DNA of 63,660 nucleotides, filler included, from Klebsormidium nitens (GCA_000708835.1; 5 parts of 5 records of this genome joined end to end with filler, not necessarily neighbours in it), one strand, 5' to 3'. Positions 14,387 to 63,660 are shown, counted from the whole stretch's first letter. Notes: a model not told the origin generated them from the letters alone. Made by a program: numbers and translations.

Positions 14387-14936
14387 AGTTAAAATGCTGA
14401 CGTCGCATAATTTGCCAACGGTCGTTGAATCGTGAAATTCAAACTGCGACCGTGGGGCGCATCATTTTGAACACTGAAATGGCCGCTCCCGCAAGCAATT
14501 GCAGCATCAAATCTTCACCAAATCTGGCGGTGTCAAGCTTGTTCGCCTGGAACAGGCCCCGCTGGGACGCGCTCCTTTTTCCAGCTTCAAAAACGTCCAA
14601 AAACAAGGCCTGTAAGCGCAAGAATGGTGCGGTTGCCTTATAGGAGCTATTTTAGCTCGTTTTGAGAGCTGTAAAAACGGGCGCCCTCTCTTGAGGCCTC
14701 TATGTGGCGACTGAGCTTGGCACCGCCAGCAAAGAGCATGATGTGGCCAACCAATAAGGTAGGCAAGAGCCATTTCTGCAGTGCCAAAAGCTTGCGCCCC
14801 ATGAGAGAACTTGGACTTCTCTTGAGAAGTTCAAGTTCTGAGGACGGCCGGCATCCCGGCCGAATTTATAGGTGGCGGGTGGTGGTCCGAGCTACCCGGG
14901 CAAACAACCTGAAACTACAACTCCTAACCAAAAGAA

Positions 14937-51390: not shown

Positions 51391-52043
51391 TAGTGGCCAN
51401 NNNNNNNNNNNNNNNNNNNNNNNNNNNNNNNNNNNNNNNNNNNTTAATTAATTAANNNNNNNNNNNNNNNNNNNNNNNNNNNNNNNNNNNNNNNNNNNNA
51501 CTACATTGACGGGCGACTTGTCAAAAAGCGCACTACGGTTTGCCCGGGGCCCGAGAGACGCGGTGCTGTTCATCGAGCGGTGCCACGTAAAATGTACGGA
51601 ACCGAGTCAGCCAATGAAAAGTGGGGACTTGACAGTCCACGTGGGTCTGACATTTTGGACAGCCTGAATCGCTTTCGTCAGCATACACGCTTCAGCTCCA
51701 ACCATGTCTGGAGCACTGTACTCAGGTGTCACCAGTGTACACTGCAGAGCGGATGTCAGACCACGGTACCCGCTGGCATGTCTTCCATGGAGCGGATGCC
51801 AATTGGCACAGCTAGCTAGCCCTCGCTTCAGTTGCTTCAATTAAGCTCAAGATTGCAGTCAGGAAGCACTTGTCACAGCTAGCTAGCAAGGAGAAGGGAG
51901 GATGTAGACGGGCAACTCTCAAAAATGACTTGTCGGAAGCATGTGATGATGGCCCACGTTTAGATTAAGCTTATTGTATTAAAACTTCTGGTGAGAGCTC
52001 AGAGTTCTTGTGCCGCGGGCCCGACTCTGTAGGCAGTAGCATC

Positions 52044-55000
52044 ATGGACAGGGATCGGGACCGCTTTCGGCCAGTCCATGTCAACAACTGCTCTTTTCAG
52101 CCGGTACAGCCGGCGGTGGCGCCGCAGTGGGTTGCAGCTCCTCTTCTAGCCAGGCTGCCTGTGACTATGCGGCACAACCCTCGGCCACGGCTTGGTGATC
52201 ATCCCATCAATGCAACGCAAGGGCTCCCTCAGGAAAGAACGGCCTTTGGGCAGGCTGAGAACGACGAGAATGTGGCTCCACCGGGGCACGTTCCCGGGGT
52301 GCAGCCAGCTGCTCCCTTTGCTTGGGTAAGCATAGGCGGCAGCACCCGACGCAGCACAGTTAACTGCAGACCTATTCATCCTGTGCCCCAGCTGAAACAC
52401 AGTGCAGTGTTGTAATGGAAGTAGGCTTGTCTCACTTAAGCTTGGCAGCTGATTTACTTCTGATGAGTGCCAGCAGATTGAAGCGACCACAACTGCATAT
52501 CAGACTGTCCAGTGTCCTGCGAAAGTGACATTTTTTTGAGAAACATTGTCTTTCCTCTGCAGCGCCCTGCACCATTTCCGCAAGCCCCCTCGTCTTTCAG
52601 CGTCTTCATCTTCTCACTGGAAAACATGGTAAGCAGAACAGTCATGCAGAGTCAAGGTCTTGACATATCTCTCTTGCGAATCTGCAGTGTGGTTTGTAGC
52701 ATCCATGGCCAGACTTCCATTGTTGCATCTTGTTCATCTGCAAAGAGAGCGATGGCCTGCACCATACAAGCTGGAGAAGATTGGCTGGTGCTCTGTTGGC
52801 TGATTGAGTGGTCAATATATGCCGTCCTCAACACACTTCCAGATAGACTACAATGCTTTCAACCAAGTGGACATAGATTGCAGTGATTATGTGATGAACA
52901 CAGCTCTTTCCAGCGCACTTACGTGTATTGACGTATTGCAATGTCCTTGCAGCCCGTGATCGGCGATGGGACAAGGACAGCTCGCATTAGCGCCGCGATC
53001 AGCCAGCGCGATCGCGCTGGCCTGGAGAAGGTTGCTTCCTACTTCTCCTGTGGGTCTCTGGTGGGTCTCTTGAGTGCGCTCGGTTCAGGCGGACTGATCA
53101 GGCGGACGCAGCAGTTGGCTGCGAATGAAGTTATGGAGCAGAACAGGGCCAGTGCTGCAGCTCTGAGGGGCGAAAGGGATGCAGCCTGGAGAGAAGTCTT
53201 CAAAGTGCAGAGAGACCGGGAAGCGGCAGCAGCAAAGGCTGCGCAGTGGGAAGCGCTCAGCGGGCAGTTGGAAGAGGCAGGGAAGCAGCAAGTCACGGAG
53301 CTTAATCACGAGCTTCGCCGCTGTCGGGCAGACCTGGGGGAGGCGTTAGGCAAGCTGGAGAAGAAGAATCAAGAGGTGGCCACGCTGGCAGGGGAGTTGC
53401 TGCGGAAGGGGAAACTTGCATCGAAGCGGAAGATGGCTGCTCAGGGGCTGAAAGAAAAGGAGACGGAACGATTGCAGCAGGAACAAGACAAGGGTTGGCT
53501 CAAGCGTGAGATGGCTCGCTTGGCAAGGAAGTTCGATGGTTGTGATGGGGGCAGGGCGGCGCAATTGATTGCGTCGCTGGGGGCAAGACAGAGAAGGGGC
53601 AGGGTGTTGAATGCAAAGCGGCGAGCGCAGAACCACCGCAATGCGAAGGTGCGAGACGCCTTGGTTGAGGCCCTCGCCAAGGTGAAGGCTGCTGTTGGGA
53701 CAGGGGACAGCCCGGTGGAGGATGAGAGACGAGCGCTCGAGGCGGTTGGAAAGGCGCTGCAGGTGCGGAGGGGAAAGAAGGTCATCACCGCTCGGCCGGA
53801 GCTGCTTGTGCCGGAGAGGGTGGGAAAGAAGTTGCGGGAAGAGGGAGAGAAGGCGGTGAAAGAGTGGATGCGGAACCCTGCCAGGTGGGTGAAAATGATG
53901 GATGTCGGAGACGTCAGTTTCAGCCGAGCTGACAAGCTGACTGTGGCGTTCCCGCCGGGGTCTAAGCCGCCCAACAAGGACATCATCCACGAGAAGAAGG
54001 TCCTGAACGCGGTGATGCAACAGGTCAACCCAATCTACCCTACTCCGGGGGGGAATGGACACCAGTTCCGGCTTGCGCGCGCGGTCGAGCTTGTGCTCCC
54101 ACTGTGGTTTGACGAGTTGAAGAAGGCACGGCAGCCGATGAGGATCGACTGGGCCACCAAGACGGGGAAGTTGATGGTGAGTCTTGTGAATGCCGCCGCT
54201 CCCCTTTCTAGTTTGTGATGACAGTATTGGTGTAGATACTTGCTGTCGAGCTTTCCGCAGCCTGGTGCTCACAATTCATCGAATGCAGTGGGAAGCCTGA
54301 CCCGGGGTCACTGTTGTCAGGGATTTGTAGGAGCTTATGCTGGAGGGGACTGCATATTATTGTGAGACTCAATCTATTGGTGCACTTTATCCAGACTGCG
54401 GGCGCATCGCCTGACTTCTTGCGTCCGCCTGTCTGGTCAGTCTGAAGTGTACAGCATCCTCGCACGTGATAAGCCCACGAGGGCGCTGCGCACTGGCTGC
54501 AGAGTGGCACCCTCACGGATGAAATCGTGAGAACTTTGGTTGCGTCTTTTTCTTTCAGCGGAATCACCATTGGGATTTCATGTTCACACAGGGCGTCTCA
54601 AATATATTTATGTTTGTCTCATTCTTGCATGCAGATTGCCTGGACAATGGATGCAAGGACCCGGAACCACCGCGACTTTAACACATTGGTGTTTCTGGCC
54701 AAGGAGGACGGCTTGGAGTTCCTGTGGCAGTCGCGCAGATGGGTGTTTACGCACGCGGAAGTCCGGGGCAAGGACAACAAGAAAAACATCGAGGGTGACC
54801 TCAAGCCTGCGTTGCAGGAAGTACAGGTATGTTGCTCTCCGTTCCCACTGTTGCTACGGCTTACCTTAAAGTGGCTTCTTGCTAGCACGTTCCGCATGTT
54901 GCTGGAACCGTAGTTGGAGCAGGAGTAGTAGGAGAAGGGGTGGTCAGGGCAGGAGTGGTCGGGGCAGGAATGGTCGGGGCAGGGGTAGTGGGGGCAGAAG

Positions 55001-58000
55001 TNNNNNNNNNNNNNNNNNNNNNNNNNNNNNNNNNNNNNNNNNNNNNNNNNNNNNNNNNNNNNNNNNNNNNNNNNNNNNNNNNNNNNNNNNNNNNNNNNNN
55101 NNNNNNNNNNNNNNNNNNNNNNNNNNNNNNNNNNNNNNNNNNNNNNNNNNNNNNNNNNNNNNNNNNNNNNNNNNNNNNNNNNNNNNNNNNNNNNNNNNNN
55201 NNNNNNNNNNNNNNNNNNNNNNNNNNNNNNNNNNNNNNNNNNNNNNNNNNNNNNNNNNNNNNNNNNNNNNNNNNNNNNNNNNNNNNNNNNNNNNNNNNNN
55301 NNNNNNNNNNNNNNNNNNNNNNNNNNNNNNNNNNNNNNNNNNNNNNNNNNNNNNNNNNNNNNNNNNNNNNNNNNNNNNNNNNNNNNNNNNNNNNNNNNNN
55401 NNNNNNNNNNNNNNNNNNNNNNNNNNNNNNNNNNNNNNNNNNNNNNNNNNNNNNNNNNNNNNNNNNNNNNNNNNNNNNNNNNNNNNNNNNNNNNNNNNNN
55501 NNNNNNNNNNNNNNNNNNNNNNNNNNNNNNNNNNNNNNNNNNNNNNNNNNNNNNNNNNNNNNNNNNNNNNNNNNNNNNGGAGTGGTCGGGGCAGGAGTGG
55601 TCGACATATCAAGTTGGCTGTGACTAGCTTTTCGGCTGAAATGTTCAAGGAGAATCAGGCTTTGGTTGAATGATCTTGAGCCAGCCAAGATCTGAATTTG
55701 CGTCAGCTGAAGCGCGTACATCTGGCTGGCCAGGTCCTGCTGACTTGCTTTGCCGAAGGGCAGCAGCTCCACGTCAGATGCTTATAAAGCACGAAAAACC
55801 TTCATACGGGCCACTAACACACTGTTTTGCTACTCCAGGAACTGTATGACGGCAAGCCAGTCACGATCAAGCTTCTACACCCCGAGACGCTGCAACTGGT
55901 CGCTGTTGAGGTAACCTTGAAGGTCCTCATTCCTGGCGACATGTCCATGCACTGGTCCCTCTTCCAAGAGGGTGGTGGTCGGGGGGGCAAAGATGCGCGT
56001 CCCTGTGGTCGGTGCAATTGCACCAAGGAGGACCTTGGGAAGGCGTTCCAGAGGTTTGAGGTCAAGGAGGGGGAGACCTTAGAGGACGTCGCGCTCCACC
56101 TTGGATACTCTGCCGACTTTCTGCGAGAGATTAATCCCGCGCTCACCAGCCCTATGGATCTAGTGTACAGGAAATTCCAGAAGGCGGTGCCTGCGCCCCA
56201 GCAGCCGGAGCCCCCTATTCAGCCAGCTTCGAAGAGGAAGAAGAAGCCTGGTCCCCCGCCACCCCCTCAAACGGTCGAGTGGGCTCCTACTCTCTCGTTG
56301 GATAGGGACAGCCTGCCGCAGGACAATCAACCGATTGGAGCAGGGTGAGTGGATCTCCCTTTCAAAAGTTACTCTTGGGAGAGGCTTCACGCCGGCACCA
56401 AGTGACATCCCAAGGGATTGCAAGTGGTCGGGGAAGCCTCCCAAGCTGATGGAATCTGCAGCGGTGCGTTTCTTTGGGGTTCTCTGTGACGTCTTGCAAC
56501 TCTGAAGTCATCAGATTAGTTGGGAAGAGAGGTTCTGGCTGATCGCCGTTCGAGCTGCTATTTTCTTGGTGCGCCGTGATGGGTGTCCTGAAGCCCCGGG
56601 CACTAGATCGTGATTGGAGATCGTGTCCCGAGCTGGAAGCGAGGTGGCACCAGTCTGGTTGGTGATATGTGCCGGTAGCTCTTGACTCAAGAATCTGGTC
56701 GGAGGATCTAGCAGCGACTGACTGCAATATATCCACTTTCGCTTTCTCAGATCATTTAAGAAAGCGGCATAATCTCTTTAGATACTGACAGCGGGTATGA
56801 TCTTCGTAATGGGTAGGGGTTTGCCTTGAGCTGGACAATAGGTAAGCTATTGTGTTCAGGGTACGCTGCGCCGTGCGTGCAGCCCTGGTCAAATGAAGGG
56901 AGTTCAGATCTGCCCCGTCCAGTGTCGGATGAGCAGCTTGTATTCAACCATTCTGATTCGCTCACTTCATTGTTCTCGGTTCAGGTTCATTCGCGTTTTC
57001 ATCAACTGGTCCATGAACCGCGAGTGCCCGCACGCGTACCTGAAGGTCGAGCACGAGGACGCTCCGTTCTGCTCGGAGCACATGACCGCACGAGTGGTCG
57101 AAAACTTCCTCAAGTGGGTGCACATGCGTGCACAAGAGCGGTGAGTGCTCACTATTTCCTTTTTGTGGCATGCTGTCCAGTCGCGGCCGTTGGGCCGTTG
57201 CATACGGAGTCCGTTATTTCCAAGGATTCGTCAGAAGCCGCTTAAGATGATCTCTGAAGCCTGCTCTTGCTTCTTTGGAATACAACGATCGTTAGCGAGA
57301 GAGCTCTGTAACCTGTTTGGGCTTTGCATGTTTCGGCTCCTGAGCTACCTTATTTGTGTCGAGACAATCTGCCGCGGCAGCGCTTCCCATTCGGGAGGGG
57401 TTTGATTAGGCTGCCGCATGCAGCCGCTTCTAAAAAATCATTTTCGCTTGCTGATTATTTCCCTGATATGCAGGGCGCAAGTCGACGAGATCAACGCAAA
57501 GTGGAAGGAGTTGAAGATCAACTACGGCATCAAAAAGAAGCCACAGGGGCAGGGGGAAGGGTACAAGGACCCGAGCTGCAAGGGAAAGGTGGCTCGGGAT
57601 CTTCTGCACAAAGTCGAGGAGTGGGTGCCCCTGTTGCTGAAGCCCGGCGAGGAGCAGATTCTGGAGATCTGGCAGCTGTTCCGGCGGATGGTTGCGACTG
57701 CGCGCGCCTATCACCCCTGCTTCTCGGACATCCAGGAGTTCAAGACGACTGCAGCCCGGCTCTTCATCCTCCACCGACTGCGTCTAACGGACGAGAATTT
57801 TGCTTACTACATCCACACAGTCTGCTGCCATGGTACTTGCGTCGTTCTTATCTCACGTGATATTGACTACTTGTGCTGAGATTCTCTAGTCCTGCGTTAC
57901 AGAATGAAAGTAGGTGGTTTGATTCTTTCCCCTTCACAACTAGACCGGAAAGACCCCAGCTGAATAATACGTGTTAGTTTCTTCCCCTTGCAGGTTATAC

Positions 58001-58919
58001 ATACCTGCTCCGGGGGGGCCTTGGCCGCGTCATGCAAGAGGCTGTCGAGGCTGAGCACCTGGACAAGGACAAGATGGTCGAGGGCACTTTCCAGGGGGGG
58101 AATCCGGGGAACCCATATATGACCAAGACCAAGGGCGAAGACGGCCGATGGCACTATGATAAAGATGGTCCTCGGAGAGAGATGAAGGTTAGAGCTCGCA
58201 TTCACCTTTGCTTCCATTCTTGAAGCGACGCTCGAGGGCCTCGCATAAACAGCTTGCACTTGTTCCGTAATTCTAGCTTCCGTGGGCTCAATCAGCATTG
58301 CTGTGAAGTACGCTTGGTAATTATCTTCCCACGTTTCACTCTCTTTCTCTACTTTGAGGCCCAAAGTGGATCCGAGCACAACACCTGACCAATATAAGAT
58401 TCTGTCACAAACCTGATGTGTCACTTGAACGAGTATTGATGACGGAATTCTGTTCTGCAGAAACAACACATCACCGAGTACGTGATGCAGAAGACAAACC
58501 GGCTTCTATACTACCGATTGAACCATTACTGGAACCAAAGATGGTTAGCTGAGTTGTTCGATAGGGTTAGGGCAAACCTTGGTGCATTCGAGCAAAGCAC
58601 GCAGCAGGCTGTTGAGGCCGAGATAGACGAGGATGACGAGCTTCTCGAAGAAGTTTTAAACGAGCAGGAAGAGGAGGCTAGTCGATGGTCAGGGGCAGCT
58701 GGGCAGGTCAATCATAATGTTTGCGCCATGTGTCAACATGAGGAGGCGGCTAGCACAAACCCTCTGGTAAAGTGCTCAATGTGCTTCCGAAGGTTCCATA
58801 GGTTGTGTCATTCACCTGCTATAGCGCAGACAGAGGGTGAGAGCTCCCAGTGGCACTGCGCAGACTGCCACGACCCAGGTGCTGCGTTAGGAAATGACGG
58901 TGACAGTGACAGTAGCTAG
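52044..58919 (+). CDS. RAG1/Transib-like DDE transposase with N-terminal coiled coil, internal LysM-like motif and C-terminal PHD finger, ~1145 aa; exons 52044-52325, 52563-52628, 52953-54176, 54635-54826, 55839-56344, 56985-57140, 57474-57832, 57994-58187, 58461-58919
   Basis: All introns are GT-AG with compatible phases; the CDS totals 3438 nt and follows the open frames of the ORF track. Motifs in RAG1 order: IAWTMDAR (D1), LIPGDMS (D2), PCGRC, PFCSEH (C/DxxH), CKGKVARDLL, YYIHTVCCH (HxxxxH), GGLGRVMQEAVEAEH (E). Exons 1-2 are the least certain. Confidence 0.8.
54910..55603 (+). repeat. 15-bp minisatellite (gtggtcggggcagga-like) spanning an N gap, inside transposase intron 4
   Basis: Units are visible on both sides of the 55002-55578 gap. 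Confidence 0.85.
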
Positions 58920-59787
58920 CACTTGATGCAAACATGTACTATGTGTATATAATTATTTCCAAGATTGAGATCCATGAGTCGGACTTGACCTGCTAACATG
59001 GCCAGCCTCGGCCACAGTCCCGGGACCTGATTCGTGGTTCATGAGTTGTCATCAACTGCTATACTCTGTGACTGCTGATTAATATATTCAAATTATTCTG
59101 CCTCTCGCAAGCTCGAGATCGACATGCAATTACTTATATAGTTGTCAATGATGGTGACTCTGGCCGGTCGGTCCGGTCATCCTAGGCAGCTAGGCTGAGC
59201 CTAGTAGCCTTGAATGAACCGTCTCATTCAATGGGATGATGTATTCACATATCATCTCAGAGACTGACTGCTAACTTATTGAAGGTGGCTAGTGCATGCA
59301 ATCTAAGGCCGCGGGCGGCTTCAATGATGCAGATGGACATGAGAAACATTGGCCGGCCGCTGCACGCGCATCATCTGGCAACGCCAAACCTGGCCGCGCC
59401 GCCTGGCCCCGATCATGCAAGCCCCTTCATGCGACATACATTTAAGAATTATATAGTATACGCAGTGACACATGTGCACCAAAGCCCCTCGTTCGCCACA
59501 TGCCACATATGCATTTGCTAACGTATGATGATATAGCTTGAATCACATAAACCGCTACTGCATGGGGATGCGGCATTGCATATATATTGAACTCATTTAA
59601 CAGCGCGCTGAAATACGGTATATGCGCATGATTGTGTACTCCATGCCATGCCGCAACTGCAAATGGTACTTGGATTTACAGTTGGATGGCATCATTGCAT
59701 CCGAGCACGATGTGCATTGATGCGGCTGTAACCGAACGGCAGTGCCCACATGCATGAATATCATGAAAGAACTGAATACGATTCTAT

Positions 59788-61173
59788 TCACTTTGGAACA
59801 CGTTTCATTGCGAGGGGATTACATCGAGTGTCCCACTGACTAGCCCCTGCAAGGTTGAACATCTCTAGCCCGTGCATCCTAACCTTCAATTTATCCCCTG
59901 CTGGCGCTAACTCAAAAACAATTGGCAGGTGGATCTCGTACGAGTTCATATCCCCTCCAACCCGTGCGGTTTGCGCATACTTTATCCACCAGTTCTGACC
60001 TAGCAAGGGTACCAGCTGCTCCTTTTGGTCAACTCGAAGCTGGATGCACGATTTCTTCTGGTTCCATGTAGTACAATCTAATAGACTGGGGGGCAGTAAG
60101 GCAACCTCTCGCAAAGTGCAGCGAACACTGCACTCGGGAACCCACTTATCTTTTATAACCGTCTTGTTAGCTACATATGCTTGGAGCCTCTCACCAAGTT
60201 CACGGGCTAGATCTGCAATCATGTCGCTTGCTTCGCTAGTATTCCTATAAGCCTGAGCCTGGAGGTATTTTAGAAGTCGAGGAAGGCTGCTCGGTCCCCG
60301 CGAACTTCCCTCCAGGTTGAAGTCAATATGCTTGAGGAGGCCCGAATCATAATCCCAGACGCTCTGTATCCAGAACATGCAAGAAGTGTGAAAGCAAGCC
60401 GGAAAGCTTTCACAGTACAAAACACAATATAAGATTCGCTCATACCACCTTCTCACTAAGCTTAGAAGAAAGACTCGCATGAAACGTCAGCTTGGTTCGT
60501 CAAACCGGCCAAACAGCCAACCAGCCAGAAATGAGCTCCCAAGACGTTTATCTAGAAGAGATTTTCGAGACTTGCTAACGATCAAACGCGAAGTACAGGA
60601 AATCCGATTACCGAGCGTGGACAAGTGCAATCAGAGAGTAGCATCTGAGCGAGACACACAAAGCTCGGGTTCACTTACCTTGTAGTACAGCCCGTCCAAG
60701 TTTTCTCCCACAAAGAAGGGTTGAACATCCGTCAGATCTAGAATCTCGTCAACTTCAAACTCAGCTCTATGCCTAGTTACGTACACCTCGCTGTCCTCTT
60801 TACTGCCTTGAAAGTCGCTTATACCGGACAGCACTCGAATATCTTCTGCTCGCCAAAAGAAATAGCCTGCCCCTGTCTTTCCTGACGGATGGTTTGGGGG
60901 AAAGAGCTCGGTGATAAGAAGGATGAATGGAGGGGTATTCTCCTGCTCGGGTCGGAGAAACACACACTGTCCTACGAACAGGGTCCCAGGTGAGTCATTA
61001 GGCATCAGCTTATACCAGCCTTTGCCTTTGAAAGTCAACGAGGAAATTAGGGTCTGCTCAATGGAGGGTGCCCACCAGGACAGAACCTGCTCAATAGAGA
61101 CTGTTTCGGAGGTCTCCCAACTCGCTAGAGCTGCAACACAAACCACTTGGATGAGTATGATATGCATGGGTCC
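59788..61173 (-). CDS. BAH-domain protein, last two exons (61173-60679, 60363-59788), convergent with the transposase; likely further exons up to ~63290 are unresolved and possibly decayed
   Basis: LFVGQCVFLRPEQENTPPFILLITELF..GYFFWRAEDI..EVYVTRHRAEFEVDEIL..LYYK|SVWDYDSG fits the BAH pattern (VGD-V-v-P, pyI-I-e, WF-R-e, Elf-s, Y-D-tg). The splice YYK|gtaagt...tacag|AGC is in phase 0. Confidence 0.7.
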
Positions 61174-63660
61174 CTGGAGACAAAATGCACTGCTTTGAAG
61201 ACAGTAGATCATTCACTAGACGAGTTGTGAGCAGTTGGGGCTGAAGCGGTGCATTGCATCCAAGTGTTCCCAGTCAACTCCACACCTCCAACGCCAGTCC
61301 ATGACAGCAAGCAAGACCCACTTCATAGTGCAGAGCAAAAGCGCGCAATCCAAGGTTTTGCTCGCAATCCAAGGGGAGTGCTCCGCACCTGGACCTTTCT
61401 GCTTCTTTCGCGCGCCGGCTGTGCCGCTCTTGACCGGCGACAACCCATCAATATCTACGCCTGCGCATGAAGTGCAGAAAGTGAGCAATCAATGGCACAT
61501 TTGTAATAAATCAGTGCAGACGCACAAAACTGGAAGAGCGATCGCCCCAATCCTGGATTGATTTTTTCAAGGGGTAATGCAACAGGGTGGAAGAGTCCCC
61601 CCTGAAAGATAATTTCGAGCTGTTTCCGAACCACTATTATCCAGGGAGGGGCAAACAACAGAGTAAGGCAGGGCTCCCTTGGGCAAAATGCCGCATGCAA
61701 AGTCACCGGCAACATACCAGGAACACCCCCCCTGGAAGAGGCCGCACAAATCGATTGCGCGGCGCTTTTGCAAGAAGCTCAGTAGTGACAAAGCGAAGCA
61801 GGCCCTATGGACAATTGTGCTGGTCCCAGTTATATAAGGTGGGAGCAATCCTTCCTTTTCAGAGAATACGACACAGACTCTAGACAGCAAGACCACCGCG
61901 GCACACCCGTCAGTGGACAACCGTCAGTCCTGGTATATGAAAGTGCAAGCCCCAAAGCAGGCCCATATGTAAGGTGAGGAACATGGTACTTCTTTGACGG
62001 CATAGCATCTGCCACTTCGCCCTGTTTAAATGAAGACTTAAGGCAGACCGCAACCCTTACTCCCCTGGCATTTGGGTCACTCACCTGCATCTAGCTGTGC
62101 GTAATTATGCACAGCCCGCCTCCGCTTCGCTTCCTTCCCCGCACTTGCAGACGTTGCTGACAACAGTGCAAGACAGCAAGCATTGAGTGTTTAACCCTTT
62201 TGGTACTATGCAAAAAGCAGATTTGCATATTATCAAGGAAGACTTGCAGGGAACAGAAACAATCGGTGATTGCTAATGTTATAATCATGAAAAAAGCGTA
62301 CCAGCAGACCAAACGTTTAATCATTCAGGGAAGTCACTCACATGCCTGGTTCTGCAATACTTCCGGAACAGGAGGCCTTGCAGTTGAGGCTACCGATGCT
62401 GGAGGTTCATCTGCTTGAGCACCGCGCTGAATTCCTGGACCAGAAGCAGGTACGGACCTTCTGGAAGGTGCTGCACAAGTATAAGGGTGTGCGCCAGGTA
62501 AGAAGCACTAGCCTGCCCGGCAAGTGTGGAATATAATCTATGTTGATCGAGAGTGGTTGAAATTGCTAAGTGTTCATGACCCTTGGCAGTCTTGGATTGC
62601 TGGAAAGAGGGAGGAAGCAGCATCTCAGCCACAGGCGCTGCAGGCCCTGCCACTGAAGGAAAGTTTGCAACCGCAGAGCAGTGGCCCCAGTACATGAGAC
62701 ACGCAAGAGCCGGGGAAGTAACCTGTCACAATGAACGAGCAGCAGATAGAGGCTGGATGATTACGAGCGATTATGCATGAATTCCTCTTTCACGCAGCTC
62801 TTCTTCTCTATCCTTACTCAGCTCCGACAAGGCCTGCCAAGGGTTGGCCAAGGGTTGGCCAAGGAATCAACCCAAAAACCCAAAGGATGAGAGAACTTCA
62901 GCGGACCAGTCCTGTCAAAAACAAGCCATCTGTTTACAGAAGGAAACCAAAGCTACAACTTCCATTTAATGCACACATTGAAGACACCTCACCTTTTGCA
63001 ACAGCCGCTACTGCTGGGATGTGCCATGGATAATTCCCCCACAGGTTCGTCAAGTCTGCACTTGGGTCCAGCCGCTTCATACATGCCTCTACTTGCACTT
63101 TGCTTGCCAAATAGACCCCTTTCTTCAGGGCTGGCTCCACCCCCGGGGGCCACATGTACCTGTCCATCCAGATCCGCTGCCCTGTCTTATCTATTGTTGA
63201 CCTACAGCCAACACCCCAGCTGAACCCTGGCGGTGCATATGGAGGCCCCTGCCCCCGCGCATTAGGTCCTACAGGGGGCACTTCAAACATGTTTCAACAC
63301 CAATGAAGTTGCCAGACAAAGGCGGGGCCTGCTCGCTGCAGCCAGAAGGGCCAGCTCGCCCCCGAGACACAAAACCTGGTGGCGCGGCTACAGAACAGGG
63401 GCTTGGCAACAGGGAAGTAGTCCACCCTGACAAAGACAGAATAGGTATAGTAGAGCTCAGCACCTTTTCCTTGACAATGGCGGCTGTGTTCGGTCTGCAG
63501 CTCGCAACAGCCCACCTTTCAACCTCTTTGCCCTGGCAAGGAAGGTGGGCCTAGGTAGATAGTATTACTGTATCGATCTGAGGTAGAGTCAGCATGGCGG
63601 CAGCGCGCTAGCGCACCCTGGCACTGGCGACCGGACCTGGCAGCGGACACGTAGGCCGCA

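Follow-up and report, generated by a model that had tools for sequence, protein, structure and literature searches.

The 63,660-nucleotide stretch of DNA analysed here (the window) joins five records of the genome of Klebsormidium nitens (GCA_000708835.1) with filler, and its piece 51500-63660 is one whole K. nitens scaffold of 12,161 bp that carries the annotated protein KFL_011710010. The scaffold holds two convergent genes, which very probably make it a nearly complete, autonomous two-gene cut-and-paste transposon, with a DDE transposase of the EnSpm/CACTA-Mirage-Chapaev-Transib (CMCT) clade on one strand and a partner protein with DUF7081, BAH and orphan domains on the other. The transposase gene (52044-58919), delineated by six-frame inspection and reading of splice sites, has nine exons, as proposed by an original prediction made from the sequence alone; all of its introns are GT-AG, and it encodes 1145 amino acids (aa) with no internal stop. 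The partner gene lies on the minus strand, with its stop codon at 59788-59790, its ATG at 63290 and a product of roughly 500 aa; its stop is 868 nt past that of the transposase, in keeping with the predicted distance of about 0.87 kb. The features of the scaffold, in window coordinates, are as follows (L and P numbers denote related copies and related proteins, respectively).

51500-51532, plus strand: left terminal inverted repeat (TIR) at the scaffold start, reading from TIR base 2 ACTACATTGAC, 13 nt, AAAAAGCGC
52044-52325, plus strand: transposase exon 1, from ATG 52044, 94 aa, GTAAGC donor, collinear blocks in L004 and L006
52563-52628, plus strand: transposase exon 2, 22 aa, AG/GTAAGC borders, a small homologous exon kept in L001 and L004
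52953-54176, plus strand: transposase exon 3, coiled-coil-rich N-terminal region and conserved pre-catalytic region
54635-54826, plus strand: transposase exon 4, with the putative first catalytic Asp, D530 (WTMDAR, codon 54650-54652)
54910-55605, no strand assigned: intronic 15-nt tandem repeat, unit GTAGTCGGGGCAGGA, holding the assembly gap 55002-55578
55839-56344, plus strand: transposase exon 5, with D622 (PGDMS), C644/C647, a LysM-like insert (~56058-56162) and a Pro/Lys-rich linker
56985-57140, plus strand: transposase exon 6, with the C(2)H motif CSEH (57070-57081)
57474-57832, plus strand: transposase exon 7, a helical insertion domain ending in HTVCCH (H923/H928, 57814-57831)
57994-58187, plus strand: transposase exon 8, with the putative catalytic Glu, E947 (last E of QEAVE, codon 58047-58049)
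58461-58919, plus strand: transposase exon 9, a PHD finger (58722-58868), then the stop codon
59788-60411, minus strand: partner last exon, a ~200-aa C-terminal domain with a QWDTRC motif, stop 59788-59790
60679-61146, minus strand: partner BAH-domain exon, borders approximate
61387-61464, minus strand: partner small middle exon, as in KFL_011710010; P0005 maps to this exon, and an RNA contig has a loose end at 61464
62991-63290, minus strand: partner first coding exon, DUF7081, probably an MBD-like fold, ATG 63290

The motifs named by the original prediction, WTMDAR (54641-54658), PGDMS (55932-55946), CGRC (56004-56015), CSEH, HTVCCH and QEAVE (58035-58049), were all located, and they follow one another in that order. 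The residues D530, D622 and E947 sit in motifs conserved across the family, as is the pattern P.DM.SHW..GG..C.RC. Exon 4 is the most conserved of the transposase exons (73-88% aa identity); exon 7 (65-75% identity to the metagenome copies) is the best-modelled part and aligns with the insertion domain of RAG1; exon 3 has 44-56% identity to L001, L005 and L006 (tblastn) and is collinear with P0016 and P0012. In RAG1, the catalytic residues are D600, D708 and E962 and the zinc ligands are C727, C730, H937 and H942; from the sequence, C644/C647 together with H923/H928 are predicted to form a zinc site of the same type. The spacing is close to that of RAG1 as given by the residue numbers cited in the original prediction, with 22 residues from the second Asp to the first Cys (19 in RAG1), an identical H-x4-H and 19 residues from His to Glu (20 in RAG1). 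Furthermore, the family alignment (A3) keeps invariant C598/H601 of the CSEH motif, all four zinc ligands and E757 of P0016, a single-exon relative from Cymbomonas tetramitiformis in which this Glu superposes on RAG1 E962. Two further modules complete the protein: a LysM-like insert directly after the CxxC (Pfam E=0.005 in the window; as low as E=4e-6 in the Cymbomonas relatives, two of which exceed the cut-off; structural match to LysM with Z about 6) and a C-terminal PHD finger (Pfam E=1.5e-6, 28.6 bits against a cut-off of 24).

The assembly gap (55002-55578, filled with N) sits in intron 4 (54826/55839), between flanking exons that are both phase 0. A hidden exon in the gap was considered and rejected on the evidence of five related copies and of the P0016 alignment: exons 4 and 5 are adjacent across short introns in L001, L003, L004, L005 and L006, and P0016 aligns unbroken over the junction, so no coding sequence has been lost there. 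As for the RNA data, the splice 58187/58461 is supported by one contig, exactly as modelled; the remaining contigs over both genes are unspliced and of low depth, and the contigs are therefore weak evidence of expression. The predicted exons are thus borne out by RNA at this one junction. The intron 57833-57993 is read through by contigs 57618-57868, 57834-58084 and 57910-58062, which could reflect intron retention or carry-over of DNA.

The partner gene is composed of three recognisable domains. Its N-terminal DUF7081 is above the Pfam cut-off (E=3.8e-9) and is, judged by its pattern of motifs and by sequence signals that are themselves weak, probably an MBD-like fold (Pfam MBD at E=0.01 in the L008 homologue; a sole PDB profile match, to Arabidopsis MBD6, at E=0.5). 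The BAH domain of the original prediction holds with moderate confidence: the Pfam match in the window (E=6e-5) lies under the curated cut-off, and the same part of the Pfam model is matched in four of the six homologues at 14.6-23.4 bits, below the cut-off of 30.8, whereas all 10 PDB matches of a six-homologue profile are BAH proteins (best 7cce, E=5.5e-4). The C-terminal domain (alpha/beta, ~200 aa, pLDDT, or predicted local distance difference test, of 79.5 in its AlphaFold 2 (AF2) model) has 52-75% identity to L003, L005 and L006 and 38% to L008, and a weak match to Cymbomonas (E=0.006) with a shared QWDTRC motif. It has no match in the PDB, and the AlphaFold DB gives only weak matches to uncharacterised proteins; one of the weak resemblances is to a protein named chromo-domain-containing, which hints at a reusable adaptor domain, and the others belong to an accession series that we take to be coral. 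No kelch signal was found in the partner with Pfam, and DUF7081, BAH and the orphan domain stand in its place, in agreement with the prediction that it is not a kelch-PHD RAG2. The annotated 306-aa KFL_011710010 was rejected as a faithful model of the partner: RNA contigs cross two of its introns (contigs 60729-61067 run through its exon start at 60972), and it omits conserved sequence.

The limits of the element were found through L006, a related metagenome copy in which an inverted repeat (2315-2347 and 14850-14882) flanks the gene pair with its ends 12.5 kb apart. With the first 15 nt of this repeat as search pattern, the same terminus was located at L003:10513, L004:317, L005:6908 and both ends of L006 (2315 and 14882), and the homology between copies begins exactly at it. 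The Klebsormidium-type TIR has the consensus (C/G)ACTACATTCAC, a 13-nt spacer and a second conserved block, AAAAGCGC; the first letter of the window's scaffold is base 2 of this TIR. The scaffold is accordingly almost exactly one DNA transposon (estimated at ~12.3 kb), of which only the right tip is absent, and the transposon nature of the element explains why it is an orphan 12-kb piece. No inverted repeats were found inside the window piece itself, because the right end of the element lies off the scaffold. Inward of the TIR blocks, the left and right ends are unlike each other, yet each is kept between copies. In Cymbomonas, the ends read CACTACGTTCTGAC... and ...GTCAGAAAGTGGTG, 5955 bp apart, and enclose the gene pair. 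The original prediction expected CAC termini; the termini do start with CAC, as CACTACA in the Klebsormidium type (first base C or G) and CACTACG/CACCACT in Cymbomonas, but the remainder of the heptamer is En/Spm-like rather than CACAATG or CACAGTG.

Some additional observations concern these ends. In the terminus, a spacer separates a heptamer-like CAC block from an A-rich one, which reads AAAAGCGC in Klebsormidium and AAAAAA or CAAAAAT in Cymbomonas, and this layout (window 51500-51532; L009:9410-9456) recalls the heptamer-spacer-nonamer of the recombination signal sequence and the ends of Transib, with equal spacing at both ends. A loose G-N-T-N-T-G pattern recurs in the right flanks of the four Cymbomonas copies; it may reflect a preferred target or represent a small number of additional bases of the terminus. 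In part, the two flanks of L006 (2290-2314 and 14883-14910) repeat each other in inverted orientation (CGGTACG and CGTACCG), as if the insertion site were palindromic.

Exon queries retrieved diverged copies on JGI samples 3300060284 and 3300060285, namely L001 (=L002), L003, L004, L005 and L006 (=L007), and a look-up of sequencing runs places the organism of the scaffold in freshwater metagenomes as well. Wherever the contig is long enough, the partner gene is present, convergent, downstream and collinear: in the window, L003, L005, L006/L007, L008 and the Cymbomonas copies L009-L012. The convergent pair is thereby represented in four lineages of the Klebsormidium type, at a second K. nitens locus and in Cymbomonas. 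L001 is broken after the PHD exon, by a Ty1/copia retrotransposon (L001:9393-13625), and the contig of L004 is too short to show the partner. L001 has in addition a 3-kb insertion (L001:4236-7230) in the intron past the CSEH exon, absent from the 84%-identical L004. The second K. nitens locus, L008 (KFL_000290320), pairs a 31%-identical transposase with a convergent 561-aa DUF7081-BAH gene; it lies at L008:10001-22716 on the 347-kb scaffold DF236978.1 among ordinary genes (Root_cap; bromodomain/zinc finger), and its partner carries two DUF7081 copies. No TIR of the family type was found at L008, and this pair may be an old or domesticated copy.

The clearest record of movement comes from Cymbomonas, where 36 nt separate the single-exon P0016 from a convergent downstream gene whose open reading frames align with the BAH block and contain the shared QWDTRC motif. 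Four copies (L009:9410-15364, L010:5411-11211, L011:7626-13574 and L012:4520-10320) are 99.2-99.7% identical, their flanks differ, and the similarity stops exactly at the CACTACG...GTGGTG TIRs. Near-identical copies that lie on different contigs and end exactly at the TIRs are what recent transposition would be expected to leave. Their lengths range from 5801 to 5955 bp because a tandem array of ~149-nt units in the partner-gene region (L009:13365-13890) differs in copy number between them.

The two genes have also diverged together. Both order the relatives alike (L003 > L006 > L005 > L008 > L009), and dN/dS is 0.04-0.2 where computable, with dS saturated and introns that cannot be aligned. 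Stops or frameshifts occur in L001, L003, L004 and L005, of which L003 and L005 are hit in both genes. An exhaustive HMMER search gave eight proteins only, of which four were traced, to K. nitens and Cymbomonas; no relatives were found in two metagenome scans, a prokaryotic-genome scan and a viral scan. Mere orthologous synteny is ruled out by the five distinct copies in one sample, by their decay, by the TIRs and by the 99%-identical Cymbomonas copies. Likewise, a BAH gene of the host, single-copy, unlinked to other transposase copies and without shared termini, which the original prediction had named as the outcome that would overturn it, is ruled out by the convergent linkage across copies: both genes occur together in K. 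nitens, in the metagenome copies and in Cymbomonas. The proposed two-gene DNA transposon is thus upheld by shared TIRs, by convergent linkage in every copy of sufficient length and by the recent copies of Cymbomonas.

The affinity of the transposase was approached through structure. An AF2 model of the Cymbomonas core, built from a 29-row alignment, is good between the CxxC and the catalytic Glu but poor overall (pLDDT 53.8), so that TM-scores are unusable and only local matches were read. Against the PDB, the top 48 Foldseek matches are all RAG1, BbRAG1L or HzTransib (E 1e-6 to 1e-2), followed by noise, and VIA-align gives Z 11-12 for RAG1/RAG1L/Transib versus 6.5 for the P element, which ranks next among the families. 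Residues 488-757 of P0016 align to 729-962 of mouse RAG1 at 3.4 A over 175 residues, with the CxxC on C727/C730. In ESM features of the core, RAG1 ranks first (0.95, with 191 of 256 features shared). Among the structures of the PDB, the best match is hence RAG1, RAG1L or Transib, and the fold from the CxxC to the catalytic Glu is RAG1-like. In the AlphaFold DB, the transposase model also matches the K. nitens protein A0A1Y1IGS4 (C2H2-type, 1233 aa); other matches there bear accession prefixes that we presume to be those of Rhizophagus, Naegleria, a rotifer and a coral.

Several results weigh against reading the scaffold as an autonomous, RAG1-like two-gene transposon. Pfam searches with every exon and with full-length relatives, at E up to 10, found no transposase family; in particular, RAG1_RNase_H, RAG1_ZnC2, RAG1_ZnH2, Transposase_21, Plavaka and DUF4218 have no match in any family member. 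Similarly, phmmer and profile searches of the PDB returned no transposase and LysM noise only. The core model, poor as a whole, is of low confidence in its RNase H part, and the two catalytic Asp residues therefore rest on motif conservation. For EnSpm, Plavaka and KDZ, the PDB has no structure, so that RAG1 as best PDB match does not discriminate between Transib and the rest of the CMCT clade; in the ESM Atlas, a search by shape is ambiguous, with small matches to fragments of Transposase_21 and Plavaka, and the features of exon 5 alone lean weakly towards the same two families. For the window copy, the right TIR falls outside the scaffold, and alignment of its right end to L003, L005 and L006 gave no result. 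No target-site duplication (TSD) of 2-8 bp was found in the five complete copies (L006 and the four of Cymbomonas) when direct repeats were sought at offsets up to 3 nt either side, none being consistent; this is unexpected for a DDE element, and the 5-bp TSD expected by the original prediction is accordingly missing. The thin RNA support belongs here as well.

How much of the RAG1 resemblance is specific is best judged within the CMCT clade, which includes RAG1 and in which the C(2)C and H(3-4)H motifs are clade-wide (PMC12730594). The transposase and the termini have the features that define the clade (Kojima, 2025; PMC12730594), of which only the usual 2-5 bp TSD was not seen. ESTA, an EnSpm-like CMCT lineage, reportedly also matches RAG1 by HHpred (PMC12730594), so the RAG1 match does not single out Transib. 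A plausible alternative, to which we give somewhat less than an even chance, is thus that the family is an En/Spm-like (CACTA-type) CMCT lineage, possibly Lanisha or a sister of it, and that RAG1 is matched because, within the CMCT clade, structures have been solved for RAG1 and Transib alone. The termini CACTACA and CACTACG agree with this, and so do a coding capacity for two proteins (typical of En/Spm), the lean of the exon 5 features and the Transposase_21/Plavaka fragments of the ESM Atlas search.

The En/Spm terminus is CACTA, and En/Spm elements encode TnpA and TnpD. Nevertheless, the algal family differs from En/Spm in that it has neither a Transposase_21/TNP2 signature (with no Plavaka or DUF4218 match in any member) nor a 3-bp TSD, and its partner has no known relation to TnpA, with which it was not compared directly. 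Moreover, the named sets listed for the 100 ESM-feature clusters nearest to the whole core include many RAG1 and no CACTA family, and the 30 best cluster matches of the AlphaFold DB include no CACTA-type names (some of them bear prefixes that are presumably those of Nematostella, an aphid and amphioxus). Lanisha itself (Ceratodon purpureus, MT647524) is a cut-and-paste CMCT family from a streptophyte, a moss, with EnSpm-like similarity; it is listed as sharing the CMCT motifs and is an obvious candidate for a relative. Taking together the RAG1-like fold, the RAG1 match of ESTA, the missing PDB structures, the Plavaka/Transposase_21 leads and the CACTAC termini, we assign the family to the CMCT clade, where it may stand on the Transib side or on the EnSpm side, and regard its zinc and insertion module as RAG1-like.

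Comparison with the RAG-type systems leads to a similar position. RAGL elements, which combine RAG1L and RAG2L with asymmetric TIRs and 5-bp TSDs, have been described in animals and in the pelagophyte Aureococcus, and Transib-like proteins have been reported from plants; most RAGL pairs are tail-to-tail, and the AanRAGL pair of Aureococcus is described as divergent (PMC9435367). Like RAGL/ProtoRAG, the algal element is bounded by TIRs that start with CAC and continue into a second conserved block, combines a large DDE transposase with a second gene, shares the RAG1-like fold from ZnC2 through insertion domain and ZnH2 to the catalytic Glu, and has a PHD finger in the system. Unlike them, its transposase has no detectable sequence homology to RAG1L and a LysM-like insert after the CxxC; the partner has the MBD-like DUF7081, the BAH and the orphan domain instead of a kelch-propeller RAG2L; the PHD finger is on the transposase and not on the partner; no 5-bp TSD was seen; and the host is a green alga. 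With Transib (HzTransib), it shares the insertion and zinc region (Z about 11.5), the order D, D, CxxC, H-x4-H, E and CAC termini with an A-rich inner block; in contrast, Transib is single-gene, with CACAATG termini and 5-bp TSDs, and the Pfam RAG1/Transib models miss the algal family. The ProtoRAG-like or Transib-type label of the original prediction hence stands for the fold and the zinc site, but not for membership by sequence profile or for a RAG2-like partner. Its main inference, that a RAG1-like enzyme and a BAH partner are encoded by one two-gene transposon, has proved largely right. The family is apparently an undescribed two-gene lineage: neither Klebsormidium nor Cymbomonas appears in the supplementary tables of PMC9435367, and the literature searched holds no description of the family, of DUF7081 or of a BAH partner for a transposase.

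The partner could instead have been captured from the host and travel as a passenger gene that is dispensable for transposition, rather than serve as a RAG2-like cofactor. BAH and MBD-like domains are ordinary chromatin modules of the host, and passenger genes such as TET/JBP are known in transposons of the CMCT clade (PMC12730594). This is nonetheless improbable in view of the conservation of the partner in the same convergent position across two algal classes and a 31%-identical paralogous lineage, of its co-divergence with the transposase under purifying selection and of a C-terminal domain that is conserved out to Cymbomonas and has no host-family match. Least of all do we credit that the window pair is an immobile, domesticated host gene pair in conserved synteny, for although both of its genes are intact where most metagenome copies are broken, transcription is low and the diverged L008 pair has ordinary genes around it on its 347-kb scaffold with no matching TIRs found, the window copy retains the family TIR on its left side (the scaffold breaks off at precisely this point, as is usual for assemblies where a repeat begins or ends), its sister copies with the same termini decay as transposons do, and the Cymbomonas relatives are clearly mobile.

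In the favoured reading, that of an autonomous two-gene transposon, a dimer of the transposase would bind both ends of the element and cut at the CAC termini, probably by nicking followed by hairpin formation, on the analogy of RAG1 and Transib, and the element would then integrate elsewhere. The partner would act as a co-inherited accessory subunit, whose most likely role is to tether the complex to particular chromatin or to license it there, or else to regulate it; such an architecture would parallel RAG2 beside RAG1, or TnpA beside TnpD. A bolder proposal, which we regard as possible but doubtful, is that the family represents an independent, green-algal two-subunit RAG-like system, in which readers of chromatin and methylated DNA (the PHD finger of the transposase and the MBD-like and BAH domains of an obligatory partner) would select or license where cutting and insertion take place, insertion would proceed with no TSD, and the C-terminal domain of the partner would be a reusable adaptor that also occurs beside other reader domains in animals. 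If true, this would be a second, convergent case of the RAG1-RAG2 logic, separate from the lineage from which V(D)J recombination arose.

RAG1-RAG2 is the textbook example of a transposase with a chromatin-reading partner, and it raises the question of how such partnerships originate. The family described here pairs a catalytic subunit whose fold resembles that of RAG1 with an accessory gene, convergent and enclosed by CAC-initial TIRs, and the reader domains involved are unrelated to those of RAG2. It adds to the CMCT clade a lineage without any Pfam model and raises the possibility of integration without a TSD. Furthermore, its occurrence in Viridiplantae, together with the near-identical and apparently recently mobile copies of Cymbomonas, makes it a testable and tractable system, in which it can be asked whether a BAH/MBD-like partner may control where or when a RAG1-like enzyme cuts.

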